In this document: one piece after another, positions 1,591-5,065 of the stretch | How positions within the stretch are numbered: the first letter of the stretch is position 1 | Layout of the letters: every line of letters starts with the position of its first letter | Sequence record: OP999024.1 | DNA length: 5,065 bases | Strand: one strand, 5' to 3' | Position numbers and translations under genes: made by a program | The notes under the pieces: model-generated | Database searches by the model: none | The model's input: only the letters and a program-made list of their open reading frames with translations | Told to the model about the DNA's origin: nothing

Positions 1591-1598
1591 ATTTAAAG
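1591..1598 (-). promoter_or_regulatory. TATA box for the leaderless ORF at 1567, overlapping the stop codon of the upstream gene
   Basis: Minus strand reads CTTTAAAT-TATCTTTCTTTTTATTTATCTAT-ATG. The TAA of the 151-aa gene (1595-1593) lies inside the box, and the following T-tract could also terminate the upstream transcript. Confidence 0.55.
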
Positions 1599-2048
1599 AT
1601 GCTGTACCTCTATTTCCACTGGTTTCTCTACTTTTCCATCTTTGCCATCTCCTTCTATTATCTTGTCTATTATTTCTACTACCTTTTGTTCTTGCTGTTC
1701 TTGCTTACTATCTTGCTTTCCGTCTCCCTCTATTATCTTATCTATTCTGTCTCTTACCATCCTTAGATCGGCCTTCAGCTTCAAGTCTTTTGATCCCTTA
1801 TATCTCTCTTCAAGCACATCGAGTATCTCCATCATTATAGTAATTAGATCAACATCTCTCACATTTGTAAACTCATAGAGTTTGCCAAAAACTTTTAAAT
1901 AATTCATTACAACATGCACATATTTATCTACTGGCCCTAGGTAGCAATGTTTTTTATTATTATGATTTATATAGTAATATTTTCTTTTTCCTGATTTTTT
2001 GATGTATAATGTCCCATTTTCGCCACAAATCGGACATTTGGTTGTCAT
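1593..2048 (-). CDS. Putative zinc-finger DNA-binding protein (CPICG...H...CYLGP) with helical middle and duplicated charged C-terminal peptide (151 aa)
   Basis: N-terminal CxxC, a basic/aromatic strand (KKSGKRKYYYINH) and HCYLGP supply four possible Zn ligands. From memory this motif recurs in crenarchaeal virus and plasmid proteins; not verified by search. Strong promoter upstream. Confidence 0.85.
   Translation of the reverse strand: MTTKCPICGENGTLYIKKSGKRKYYYINHNNKKHCYLGPVDKYVHVVMNYLKVFGKLYEFTNVRDVDLITIMMEILDVLEERYKGSKDLKLKADLRMVRDRIDKIIEGDGKQDSKQEQQEQKVVEIIDKIIEGDGKDGKVEKPVEIEVQHL
1641..1745 (-). repeat. Two 30-bp direct repeats (1641-1670 and 1716-1745), each encoding IDKIIEGDGK
   Basis: ATA GAT AAG ATA ATA GAG GGA GAC GGA AAG versus ATA GAC AAG ATA ATA GAA GGA GAT GGC AAA: 25/30 identical, period 75 nt. 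Confidence 0.95.
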
Positions 2049-2064
2049 ATGTTAGGATCTGTTT

Positions 2065-2085
2065 TTCTAGTATTTAAAACTTTCT
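2065..2085 (-). promoter_or_regulatory. BRE/TATA promoter of the zinc-finger gene; left copy of a 21-bp inverted repeat
   Basis: Minus strand reads AGAAAGTTTTAAATACTAGAA. TATA ends at -23 from ATG 2048. 19/21 identical to 2761-2781. Confidence 0.8.
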
Positions 2086-2138
2086 ATAATCACTGACGTT
2101 GTTAACCCGTCATTTTTTACGTCTTTCACTGCCCTTTG

Positions 2139-2158
2139 TTTCTACAATTTTATAGAAA
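2139..2158. promoter_or_regulatory. Dyad TTTCTA-N8-TAGAAA directly upstream of the recombinase promoter (operator or recombinase core-site candidate)
   Basis: Perfect 6-bp arms around an 8-bp spacer (CAATTTTA). Extends to 8/9 paired positions over 2136-2161. Confidence 0.5.
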
Positions 2159-2170
2159 GAACATTTTTAA
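2155..2170 (+). promoter_or_regulatory. BRE/TATA promoter for the leaderless recombinase gene
   Basis: GAAAGAACA-TTTTTAA, with the TATA element at -30..-24 from ATG 2194. Confidence 0.6.
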
Positions 2171-2193
2171 CCGCCTGATCTAAAAATGATAGT

Positions 2194-2745
2194 ATGGCAA
2201 TGGAAGAAGGGAAGGCAATATTCAAGTGGGACAAGGGAGTTGACTTTGACAAGATGAGAAAAACATTAGAAAAAGATTATAAGCAATTTTCACAGAATTC
2301 TACTGAAGATTTTGATAAAGAGATTTACGTTGCAATTTTACTTACACAACTAGTTAATGGTACACGAATAGGTGAAGCAGTTAAGGCCTTCTACCAATTT
2401 GTAGAGGTTAGTGGCAAAGAAAGGACAATCATCTTAAAGGCTGAAAAAGGCGGGAATGAGCGCAAAATCATCATCCCCAAAGTAATCACTTATAAAAAGT
2501 ACTATTCCATCATACTTACAAAAAGTGAAAGGAAAATGGTTTCAGTTTTAAAGATGTTCTGCAAAAGACATTATGGTGTAAACACGCATTCTTTCCGTTA
2601 TGCTTTTATAACAAAAGCAATAAAAGATGGGTTACCAGCCGAAGTAGTTGCAAAAATCACTGGCCATAGAAGCTTGCGCCATATTCTAACTTATGTCCAA
2701 ACGAAAGAGGCAGAAGATTACTTGTCACGAATCGCCAATTCATAA
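2194..2745 (+). CDS. Tyrosine recombinase (phage integrase family), catalytic domain only, 183 aa
   Basis: Complete catalytic set in canonical order: R58 (NGTRIGEA), K85 (AEKGG), H132-x-x-R135 (HSFR), H158 (ITGH), Y167 (ILTY). Only about 40 aa precede the first catalytic box, too few for a core-binding domain. Confidence 0.95.
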   Translation: MAMEEGKAIFKWDKGVDFDKMRKTLEKDYKQFSQNSTEDFDKEIYVAILLTQLVNGTRIGEAVKAFYQFVEVSGKERTIILKAEKGGNERKIIIPKVITYKKYYSIILTKSERKMVSVLKMFCKRHYGVNTHSFRYAFITKAIKDGLPAEVVAKITGHRSLRHILTYVQTKEAEDYLSRIANS

Positions 2746-2760
2746 TATCTTCCCCATTTA

Positions 2761-2781
2761 AGAAAGCTTTAAATATTAGAA
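2761..2781 (+). promoter_or_regulatory. BRE/TATA promoter of the RHH gene; right copy of the 21-bp inverted repeat
   Basis: AGAAAGCTTTAAATATTAGAA. TATA at -30..-23 from ATG 2798. Confidence 0.8.
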
Positions 2782-2797
2782 TTCAAAGTGGAAACGT

Positions 2798-3148
2798 ATG
2801 GAAGAGCAGAGGATTAAAGTTAGATTCCCATTAGACAAATACTTATACGAAGGTCTTCAAAAAGTGTCAAGCTTTCTTAAGAAAGATCAAGCACAAATAA
2901 TAAATGAGGCATTAGTTGAGTATCTGCAAAATCCAGTTGATAAATACTATCTTGAGCCTGGCAAAAAACATACAAAGATCGTTAAACTAGATCACAATCT
3001 TGTTGCTGCTGTGGAAGAGTTAGCAAACAAAAGGAATGTTACACCTTCTGTTATTATGAGAACAGCTTTAGCACTTTATATAAACAAGTGGTTGGAGGTA
3101 TTTTACAAAGAAGTATTAGAAAAACCTTCTCAGACTTCTTCACAATAA
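2798..3148 (+). CDS. Tandem ribbon-helix-helix (CopG/MetJ/Arc-like) DNA-binding protein, 116 aa
   Basis: Two RHH patterns: RIKVRFPLDKYLYEGLQKVSSFLKKDQAQIINEALVEYL and KHTKIVKLDHNLVAAVEELANKRNVTPSVIMRTALALYI. Each has an alternating beta strand, helix A, a turn and helix B with the II.eAl..Y signature. Confidence 0.85.
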   Translation: MEEQRIKVRFPLDKYLYEGLQKVSSFLKKDQAQIINEALVEYLQNPVDKYYLEPGKKHTKIVKLDHNLVAAVEELANKRNVTPSVIMRTALALYINKWLEVFYKEVLEKPSQTSSQ

Positions 3149-3157: not shown

Positions 3158-5065
3158 TTAACTTTTCGACATCCACAATGCAACAAAACCTACACCAATC
3201 GCTATTATTGCACTTGGAATAATAATATACGCTGGGAAGCCTAAGTCTAACAAACCAGGAACTATAAACACACCATACGCAATCCCACCCATTCCAACTA
3301 ATTTCAAATCATTCCTCAGCATCGCTGATAGGGCAAATATCAAGAAGATCACGTTAGCCAGAATAGGGCCAAAGAAAGCAAAAGGCCCAGGCAAACTATT
3401 TGAAATCGCATTGTACACCTGTTGAGCTAACTGCGCACTACCCAATTGAACCGGCGTTACATTAAAACTAGTAGACGCATTTGCCACAACTATGTTAACC
3501 TTAACTGGCGAAGTAACAACTGGCAAAGGAATTATTGAATTTACAGGAACATTCCTCGTCACCGCAGTACCATTACTAAATTCATAAGAAACACTGACAT
3601 TGAAATTAGCAGACTGATTATAGTTGTAGAGGTATAGAAAAGCGCCAGATGAATTAACAATAGGCATAGCTACAATTTGGCCAATCTTAGGCACTGACAC
3701 TGATGGGAAAGTAACAACGTTTATCCTTATTGTAGTTGTACCATTATACACTATCTGCATTTGGCCAGGGGAAATAGATTGTGTAGTAGTATTTGTAGAT
3801 GATGAAGGCGGTGGAGTAGTAGTAGTAGCACTGCTAGAACTAGCATTAGAACTTTGCAAACTAGCTAGTGTCGTAGTATTATACATTGTAACTGTAGTTG
3901 GAGAAATGTAGTATATGATAGGGTCTTGATAAAGGATAGAACCAGCTGGAATATAACTACTTAGTAGTTGAGGAGCTGGGATAGGGAAATTGGAAAACAT
4001 TGCAGCTGTTGCAGTAGAGAATGATAGAGTTAGCGAAGAGAACTTGTAAGAAATGTAGGGCGATAGTAGATTTGCTAGGACTGGGGTAGAGTTATAGTAT
4101 AATATAGCAGTAGCAACGTAACCCGGCGTAAACGGATAGGAAACGTAGTTCAAACCTTGTGAAAGAGTGTATTGGCCAACTTGAGCACTAGACTGTGATA
4201 CAGAGTAAGGCAAAGCATAGGGCGTGTTAAGATAGCTAGGTACAACGTAAGAAGATGCCCAGCTGTTTAAGAAGATGTAGGATGGAGAAACGAAAGTAAT
4301 AGATGTTGGGCCGCTGGATGCTGCGAAATAAGATACGTAGTATAAATTATATATATCTCCTCTTATTGCTACATATGCAATTTGTGACCAAGAAAATGGC
4401 GTGTTAATGTTTATTGCTGTATACGTACCGTTTATTCCAACTTCCGAAACTGTTACATTACCAGCACTATTTTCTGTAAGGATTACAGTGAAAGTAAATG
4501 GATAGTCTGGATTTGGCTGCGGTAGTGAAGAGTCTAATCCAGTGTAGCCAGTAGATGGACCATGATACAATATATAATTACCATAAAAATCAATAGCAAG
4601 TACATAAAAACCAGCAACATTACTATCAGCGGTTTGGTTTCCTACATTTGGACTAAGAAGATCAATGCCTGGATCATAATTATGGACTGGAAATGATACT
4701 ACATGTATCGTTACATTAAGCGTTGTAGTTGAAGGCGTAAAATACCACGCTACATATTGGCTATGTAGTGAAGAACCAGTCGAGTTTACTACTAATAAGT
4801 TCCCTTGGTAATACGGTTTAGGCGATGAACCCCAATCGGTTGATTCTACTTCTGGTAAAAACGCAAATAGTTTATTGCCCAGTATCATAGGCATCTGTTC
4901 TAATGATACACCAATCGTTCCAGTTCCTAGCGAAACATAATACCACACCGGCAAGACCAGTCCAAATGTTGGCAATCCAGACTGTACTATCTGCGTACTA
5001 AATGTGAAGGTTGACGTTGAAGATATAACTATTTTGTTAAAAGTAGCATTATATACACTTACTTG
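3158..5065 (-). CDS. Large membrane-anchored surface/virion glycoprotein (adhesin or tail-spike-like), 5'-truncated; at least 635 aa in the window
   Basis: The frame stays open for 30 codons upstream of the tracked TTG at 4975 (QVSVYNATFNKIVISSTSTFTFSTQIVQSG), so the true start is outside the window. The tracked 605 aa have 16 N-x-S/T sequons, no Cys, very few charged residues, beta-rich segments, an S/T/P linker (SSNASSSSATTTTPPPSSSTNTTT) and three C-terminal hydrophobic helices. Confidence 0.9.
   Translation of the reverse strand, partial: QVSVYNATFNKIVISSTSTFTFSTQIVQSGLPTFGLVLPVWYYVSLGTGTIGVSLEQMPMILGNKLFAFLPEVESTDWGSSPKPYYQGNLLVVNSTGSSLHSQYVAWYFTPSTTTLNVTIHVVSFPVHNYDPGIDLLSPNVGNQTADSNVAGFYVLAIDFYGNYILYHGPSTGYTGLDSSLPQPNPDYPFTFTVILTENSAGNVTVSEVGINGTYTAININTPFSWSQIAYVAIRGDIYNLYYVSYFAASSGPTSITFVSPSYIFLNSWASSYVVPSYLNTPYALPYSVSQSSAQVGQYTLSQGLNYVSYPFTPGYVATAILYYNSTPVLANLLSPYISYKFSSLTLSFSTATAAMFSNFPIPAPQLLSSYIPAGSILYQDPIIYYISPTTVTMYNTTTLASLQSSNASSSSATTTTPPPSSSTNTTTQSISPGQMQIVYNGTTTIRINVVTFPSVSVPKIGQIVAMPIVNSSGAFLYLYNYNQSANFNVSVSYEFSNGTAVTRNVPVNSIIPLPVVTSPVKVNIVVANASTSFNVTPVQLGSAQLAQQVYNAISNSLPGPFAFFGPILANVIFLIFALSAMLRNDLKLVGMGGIAYGVFIVPGLLDLGFPAYIIIPSAIIAIGVGFVALWMSKS

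Follow-up and report, generated by a model that had tools for sequence, protein, structure and literature searches.

A probable stand-alone catalytic-domain tyrosine recombinase of the STSV/SMV family in the archaeal virus STSV3

In the archaeal virus STSV3 a gene of 183 amino acids (aa), annotated as 'putative integrase', probably has as its product a functional tyrosine recombinase of the STSV/SMV family in the form of a stand-alone catalytic domain. The gene lies in a stretch of 5,065 nucleotides (nt), hereafter the window, which matches sequence record OP999024.1 at 100% identity. An original prediction made from this DNA had joined the gene with its two neighbours into a split recombinase module, in which a catalytic-only enzyme would obtain its missing specificity in trans from a zinc-finger-like protein encoded divergently upstream and a tandem ribbon-helix-helix (RHH) protein encoded downstream. 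This interpretation is only partly supported by our analysis. The description of the individual genes was confirmed, whereas homologues of the recombinase largely lack conserved linkage to the other two genes, the outcome that the prediction itself had named as counting against it. The three genes are neighbours in the STSV lineage, and an obligatory three-part machine is not supported.

A predicted recombinase that consists of the catalytic domain

The recombinase gene is located at positions 2194 to 2745 on the plus strand. Its product has PF00589 as its sole Pfam match, covering residues 26-172 (E 4.8e-9, 36.7 bits, cut-off 27.1). The catalytic set R58, K85, H132, R135, H158 and Y167 is intact and in the conserved order. 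Across 59 aligned homologues there is no variation at R58, H132, R135 and Y167 and hardly any at H158 and the hairpin lysine. The AlphaFold2 (AF2) model has a predicted local distance difference test score (pLDDT) of 88.8; K85 occupies the turn that connects its predicted strands 78-81 and 90-93, and it is in this strand-to-strand turn that the catalytic lysine of tyrosine recombinases sits. In Foldseek the model was matched best by the catalytic domains of P2 Int, XerA and SSV1 Int.

The reading frame is closed by an in-frame TGA (2176-2178) located 18 nt before the ATG. Therefore, a longer N-terminus, and with it a core-binding domain, cannot be encoded. Accordingly, no N-terminal core-binding domain (~90-110 aa) was found in the 183-aa protein, and the Int(N) domain PF07935 gave no match to it. 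About 25 residues precede the Pfam catalytic domain, and the model has just two helices ahead of the Box I arginine. The Pfam match, the conserved residues and the upstream stop codon thus bear out the description of a catalytic-only enzyme with an intact R-K-HxxR-H-Y set. Residues 12-18 form the N-terminal family motif WDKGVDF, and a TATA-like TTTTTAA is present ahead of the gene at about 2165-2171.

The STSV1 counterpart ORF56 (open reading frame 56; L003:5047-5598) is annotated as a protein of 163 aa starting at an internal ATG. Since the WDKGVDF motif lies upstream of that ATG, the likely product is the 183-aa form initiated at a GTG, a start that is also used in STSV2.

A family of short tyrosine recombinases

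'STSV/SMV' was named among the newly identified, uncharacterised archaeal tyrosine recombinase families by Badel, Da Cunha and Oberto in 2021 (PMC8371274), with membership defined by at least 30% identity over at least 60% of the protein. The STSV3 recombinase is 92-93% identical to STSV1 ORF56 and STSV2 ORF54 and 44% identical to full-length ATV gp72. Its identity to the enzymes of ATV, SMV1-4, ATSV and YNP1 is 40-45% with 93-100% of the length covered, which is above the family threshold. On this measure the recombinase is an additional member of a known, named family, and it had already been annotated as an integrase.

Searches of protein clusters, genomes and viral contigs yielded about 56 non-redundant relatives. 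They originate from Sulfolobales viruses, Thermofilaceae, Pyrobaculum, Desulfurococcales, Methanothermococcus and Thermoplasmata, and further relatives were found in one Sericytochromatia metagenome-assembled genome (MAG) and in AT-rich IMG/VR contigs. The ORFs of the family comprise 159-252 aa, and most archaeal members carry the motif (W/F)D(K/R)G(V/L)D(Y/F) within the first ~15 residues. A helical N-extension of ~65 aa is confined to the ATV/SMV/ATSV clade and showed no likeness to the zinc-ribbon family described below, to PDB sequences or to Pfam. As short length is found family-wide, the missing core-binding domain is a family trait and neither a truncation nor a peculiarity of STSV3.

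The IMG/VR contigs (L067-L088, 12-21 kb) and the Sericytochromatia MAG (L027-L029) hold a divergent AT-rich clade with proteins of 207-247 aa and the motif GFDRGIDY. Many archaeal genomes contain only C-terminal fragments (about residues 90-184) of the recombinase, for instance at L045, L046, L048, L049, L043 and L047 as well as at G389:C1:100536-100739 and G341:C12:40143-40421. We considered whether these might be partitioned genes of the SSV type and rejected this explanation because no tRNA gene lies beside the fragments, which look like decay products.

Integration as the most likely role

By homology, protomers of the STSV3 enzyme would assemble on paired core sites, and Y167 would attack the DNA with the help of R58, H132, R135 and H158, K85 serving as the hairpin lysine. 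Strand exchange would then proceed via a Holliday junction. Since the whole family is devoid of a core-binding domain, DNA recognition probably rests on the catalytic domain itself, and the conserved N-terminal WDxGxD motif is a candidate for an inter-subunit or DNA contact. A precedent for a catalytic domain acting without an N-terminal part exists in SSV1 and SSV2, whose truncated Int(C) was reported to recombine in vitro at lower efficiency (PMC8371274). ATV is lysogenic and integrates (PMC12662068, PMC8371274), STSV1 and STSV2 are entered as integrating in Table 1 of PMC4390879, and both full-length and fragmentary family copies are located inside archaeal chromosomes. These observations make integration the most likely role of the enzyme.

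Several results weigh against a functional, stand-alone integrase. The structural likeness to solved catalytic domains is moderate (template modelling score 0.4-0.5, E about 1e-3), and no recombination site was found for the STSV3 enzyme. ARAGORN returned 0 tRNA hits in the window, as did Rfam for tRNA or tRNA-like sequences at E<=1; the same searches agree with the original statement that the gene is not split by a tRNA-derived attachment (att) site. Among 301 sampled Sulfolobales genomes, which may not include the host, there was no attB-like match beyond chance-level stretches of 35-50 bp. Moreover, a zinc-ribbon gene related to the upstream neighbour occurs near such recombinases more often than expected by chance, which argues for some functional tie between the two and is discussed below.

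The lack of an att site or tRNA-like sequence near the gene would also fit an invertase or an Xer-like enzyme that resolves multimers of the viral genome. So would two further observations, namely that most chromosomal family copies do not lie beside tRNA genes and that the recombinase is a core gene of spindle-shaped viruses with circular genomes. We nevertheless regard this alternative to an integrase as unlikely, given the integration of ATV, the entries for STSV1 and STSV2 and the full-length and fragmentary copies within archaeal chromosomes. It is also opposed by the family members of two Methanothermococcus genomes, which lie ~1.4 kb from a tRNA-Ser gene. The idea that the 183-aa ORF is the truncated, decaying remnant of a longer integrase could draw on the PHROG profile match, which spans only positions 65-241 of 241, in a profile built mainly on ATV/SMV-type proteins. 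This idea is effectively refuted by a ratio of nonsynonymous to synonymous substitution rates (dN/dS) of 0.05-0.09 for the recombinase, by the retention of all catalytic residues and by the distribution of the two forms: Thermoproteota, Methanothermococcus and other lineages as a rule have the short one, and the long one is found in one clade only.

In the two Methanothermococcus genomes the gene close to the recombinase is that of tRNA-Ser(GCT) (L030:6472-6559, L032:6409-6496). This closeness hints at tRNA-linked integration. No tRNA-derived flanking direct repeat was detected in a search of 16.5 kb of L030.

Gene layout and selection

The description of STSV3 (PMC10101205) does not discuss the integrase. 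In the annotation of OP999024.1 the three genes correspond to ORF4 (hypothetical), ORF6 ('putative integrase') and ORF7 (hypothetical). The features of the window are as follows.

1593 to 2048, minus strand: zinc-ribbon and helical-hairpin protein of 151 aa (STSV3_5_ORF4), based on the ORF, phrog_33343, AF2 and Foldseek.
2049 to 2193, no strand assigned: divergent promoter region, based on sequence and conserved in STSV1, STSV4 and the MAG.
2194 to 2745, plus strand: predicted mini tyrosine recombinase of 183 aa (STSV3_5_ORF6, 'putative integrase') of the STSV/SMV family, based on PF00589, AF2 and Foldseek.
2756 to 2781, plus strand: promoter of the RHH gene resembling a B recognition element (BRE) and TATA box (AGAAAGCTTTAAATA), conserved in STSV1/2/3.
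2798 to 3148, plus strand: single-chain tandem ribbon-helix-helix protein of 116 aa (STSV3_5_ORF7), based on two RHH matches.
3158 to 5065, minus strand: C-terminal 635 aa of a giant serine/threonine-rich (S/T-rich), C-terminally membrane-anchored protein (phrog_8969), given as context only.

Identity of the window to its syntenic counterparts in STSV1 and STSV2 amounts to 83-84%, and to an STSV4 contig it reaches 97%. The gene order is kept in STSV1 (ORF57/56/55), STSV2 (ORF55/54/53), STSV4 and one Metallosphaera MAG contig. It was in these genomes alone (the closely related STSV1/2/3/4 and the MAG contig) that the trio was syntenic, and there the region is collinear throughout, so the conservation of the trio gave no backing to the proposed three-gene module. 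In comparison with STSV1 and STSV2 the recombinase has a dN/dS of 0.05-0.09, the RHH gene one of 0.08-0.12 and the zinc-ribbon gene one of 0.14-0.48. Purifying selection acts on all of them, and each is a real gene. On the opposite strand, GenBank ORF5 (36 aa, window 2142-2252, minus strand) overlaps the recombinase start and its promoter; this ORF was probably called in error.

The protein encoded at 3158-5065 is homologous to STSV1 ORF54, STSV2 ORF52 and ATV gp71. This family of giant S/T-rich proteins (STSV ORF54 / ATV gp71, L005:1-3710) adjoins the recombinase gene in both STSV and ATV, with differing orientations. Large secreted proteins follow the recombinase gene in L098, L099, L013 and L014 as well, and these have no detectable homology to those of STSV and ATV. 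A role of the giant neighbours as a family-wide partner was rejected, as homology was confined to the STSV-ATV comparison and to two paralogous loci.

The zinc-ribbon gene

In 109 members of the zinc-ribbon family the positions C5, C8, Y24 and G38 do not vary, and H29, C35 and Y36 hardly do. The motif reads CPxCG...Y.Y..H....CYLGP, and C5, C8, H29 and C35 are the probable zinc ligands (CCHC). In the AF2 model (pLDDT 81.8) the strands of a beta-ribbon lie within residues 2-39 and the helices of a helical hairpin within residues 44-132. The conserved CCHC columns and the predicted beta-ribbon are in line with the earlier description of this divergent neighbour as zinc-finger-like. The top Foldseek match, PSV ORF131 (2x5c), is weak (probability 0.82, E 0.28). 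Similarly, the protein scored 18.4 bits against PF22415, under the cut-off of 27, and 30 of the 109 family members matched this Pfam family at E<=0.01. A profile search of 1.84 billion representatives yielded at least 391 clusters, almost all of them stand-alone proteins of 100-150 aa. From these matches, the STSV3 protein can be assigned to a large family whose members are small proteins encoded by mobile elements of Thermoproteota.

A 42-nt direct repeat (81%) is present inside the gene at 1642-1683 and 1717-1758 and encodes a duplicated IDKIIEGDGK unit. The duplication is located in the acidic C-terminal tail, which is modelled with low confidence and varies in length between STSV1, STSV2 and STSV3. 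In STSV2 an additional unannotated ORF of 50 aa (L002:5100-5252, minus strand) was found between ORF55 and the integrase gene. It comprises the zinc-ribbon module only (CPxCG...HCYIGP) and accounts for the longer intergenic gap (480 bp) of this virus.

The tandem RHH gene and its promoter

The earlier assignment of the downstream neighbour as a tandem RHH protein is corroborated by a separate match in each half. The N-terminal half matches the Arc-like phrog_3180 at residues 3-43 (E 1.6e-6) and RH3_dom at residues 9-49, and the C-terminal half matches RHH_1 at residues 62-96 (E 9.2e-7) and phrog_7325 at residues 63-98. BLASTP revealed no similarity between the two halves. The N-terminal half also weakly matches SSV-RH E73 (4aai, E 0.047), and among phage records no homologue of the protein was found outside the STSV lineage.

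In all STSV-type genomes the RHH gene starts 52 nt past the recombinase stop codon on the same strand. It has its own near-consensus BRE/TATA promoter, which is conserved in STSV1/2/3, and the STSV1 annotation has a TATA box at the corresponding position. For the zinc-ribbon gene a BRE/TATA-like AGAAAGTTTTAAATA is located on the minus strand at about 2068-2085. Both elements are part of a 26-nt, 85% inverted repeat which brackets the recombinase gene (2065-2090 and 2756-2781) and whose arms, conserved in STSV1/2/3, are the near-consensus BRE/TATA promoters of the zinc-ribbon and RHH genes (AGAAAGnTTTAAATA). We considered the arms as recombination sites. This is probably not the case, as two near-consensus promoters on opposite strands explain the repeat.

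Do the neighbours assist the recombinase?

Based on its domain arrangement and promoter, the tandem RHH protein would most likely be an independently transcribed, AvtR-like viral transcription regulator. Alternatively, it might be a recombination directionality or accessory factor, similar to an excisionase or to Orf2/Orf3 of SNJ2, instead of a general regulator. Its constant position directly downstream of the recombinase would suit such a function. In L044 (Thermofilum) an RHH gene also lies immediately upstream of the recombinase, as is probably the case in L014 (Pyrobaculum), where the gene was read by eye and has no Pfam match. Furthermore, two small co-transcribed proteins boost the activity of the SNJ2 integrase (PMC8371274). 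However, RHH_1 was found in just 3 of the 103 immediate neighbours of the 56 non-redundant recombinase homologues, so the linkage of recombinase and RHH genes that the original prediction had anticipated from a neighbourhood survey is not conserved. Besides, the gene is preceded by a consensus promoter of its own, no other regulators are as common in archaeal viruses as RHH proteins (PMC5569661), and all characterised archaeal integrases function without directionality factors (PMC8371274). Taken together, we consider an accessory function of the RHH protein very unlikely.

For the zinc-ribbon protein the picture is mixed. The complete genomes of ATV, SMV1, ATSV and SYV1 contain no member of its family, and the expected linkage does not hold in these viruses; near the mini-recombinases of Thermoproteota, on the other hand, the family is enriched. 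This raises the question of a two-component recombinase, in which the protein with its zinc ribbon and helical hairpin would act in trans as the N-terminal module for multimerisation or synapsis, and perhaps for site choice, as Int(N) does in cis. Several lines of evidence point in this direction, among them a remote likeness of the ribbon to Int(N). PF07935, the N-terminal domain of the SSV1 integrase, was matched by 6 of the 109 family members (best E 8.7e-6). An hhalign comparison of the family with an alignment of SSV Int N-domains gave 82% probability and E 1.1e-5, with residues 12-41 facing residues 11-43 of SSV1 Int. Moreover, the hidden Markov model of the family finds genomic Int(N) remnants that overlap tRNA genes (E 2e-7 to 4e-3), and the SSV integrase's N-terminal part is known to mediate dimerisation or tetramerisation (PMC8371274). 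With regard to gene position, the zinc-ribbon and recombinase genes of the STSV lineage lie side by side in divergent orientation. In a Desulfurococcaceae contig (L026) a mini-recombinase gene with 36% identity is followed on the same strand, after 37-38 bp, by a zinc-ribbon copy, and in a Pyrobaculum contig (L014) a copy lies 4.4 kb from a mini-recombinase. Across 401 sampled Thermoproteota genomes, 5 of 13 mini-recombinase places had a zinc-ribbon gene within 5 kb, compared to ~0.3 expected; this expectation was derived from copy numbers and genome sizes, the null is generous, and the independent lineages number about five.

Other findings speak against such a partnership. Apart from the four viruses without the gene, the 56 non-redundant recombinase loci included the zinc-ribbon family only in the STSV lineage, L014 and L026, and most zinc-ribbon genes have no recombinase within 5 kb. 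Both families reside on mobile elements, so that co-occurrence is partly expected, and several of the co-located copies are paralogous or syntenic. A fusion to PF00589 was found neither in the longer family members (189-388 aa) nor in seven chromosomal proteins of 261-322 aa with an N-terminal ribbon. In addition, there is no interaction in solution between Int(N) and Int(C) of SSV2 (PMC8371274), the likeness extends over ~33 columns only, and SSV Int(N) is devoid of the CxxC zinc ligands. A complex prediction for the recombinase with residues 1-112 of the zinc-ribbon protein scored 0.00, which counts neither way. We therefore regard a zinc-ribbon protein acting as trans N-terminal module as quite unlikely. 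The more general proposal gains as little credence from us, namely that two polypeptides make up some of the mini tyrosine recombinases of archaeal viruses, with an Int(N)-like zinc-ribbon and coiled-coil protein that assembles the synaptic complex and may select the site.

The 6-kb contig L026 also contains two large ORFs near its ends (100-2082 and 4288-6045) that share 89% identity over 320 aa. These may represent two related tandem elements or an assembly of variants.

Comparison with known systems

The proposed recombinase consisting of the catalytic domain can be compared with several described systems. STSV1 ORF56, STSV2 ORF54 and ATV gp72 share the catalytic residues and the N-terminal WDxGxD motif with the STSV3 enzyme. 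The ATV/SMV clade differs by its helical N-extension of ~65 aa, which STSV-type and most other members do not have. The SSV-type ('suicidal') integrases of fuselloviruses, such as SSV1 D-335 and SSV2 Int, are likewise tyrosine recombinases and come from spindle-shaped viruses of archaea. Structurally, the STSV3 enzyme has one of its best matches in the SSV1 catalytic domain, and the SSV catalytic domain alone is weakly active. However, SSV Int comprises 335 aa with the Int(N) multimerisation domain (PF07935) and carries attP inside its gene, whereas the STSV3 enzyme has neither Int(N) nor an in-gene attP; at the STSV3 locus an Int(N)-like module is present only in the separate upstream gene. 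By homology, Cre, XerC/D, XerA and lambda Int share the catalytic fold and the R-K-H-R-H-Y chemistry. In contrast to the STSV3 enzyme, which is devoid of core-binding and arm-binding domains, these proteins consist of two or three domains.

Similar arrangements are known for the neighbouring genes. AvtR of Acidianus filamentous virus 6 is a monomer of 11.9 kDa with two tandem RHH motifs and acts as a transcription autoregulator (PMC5569661). Like the STSV3 RHH protein (116 aa) it is a single chain of similar size with two RHH motifs from a crenarchaeal virus, although a PDB sequence search with the STSV3 protein did not return AvtR (4hv0) at E<=1. Small proteins with putative DNA-binding or coiled-coil character flank the integrase of SNJ2, an archaeal viral tyrosine recombinase, as is the case at the STSV3 locus. 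SNJ2 Orf2 and Orf3 are co-transcribed and stimulate the integrase, whereas the STSV3 neighbours have their own promoters and unrelated sequences. For the zinc-ribbon protein, PSV ORF131 (2x5c, PF22415) is the best match in both structure and profile, albeit a weak one in view of 18.4 compared to 27 bits.

The STSV/SMV family emerges from our study as a widespread and uniformly minimal type of tyrosine recombinase, which is found in Thermoproteota, Methanothermococcus, Thermoplasmata and some bacterial or viral contigs. An enzyme of 160-185 aa that recombines DNA without a core-binding clamp would rank among the smallest site-specific recombinases, and a thermostable mini-recombinase is attractive as a tool. 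The recurrent, non-universal pairing with an Int(N)-like zinc-ribbon protein offers a concrete and cheap hypothesis on how such enzymes are assembled. If the two-polypeptide reading were true, such a recombinase would represent an evolutionary stage between the split and the fused integrases of archaea.

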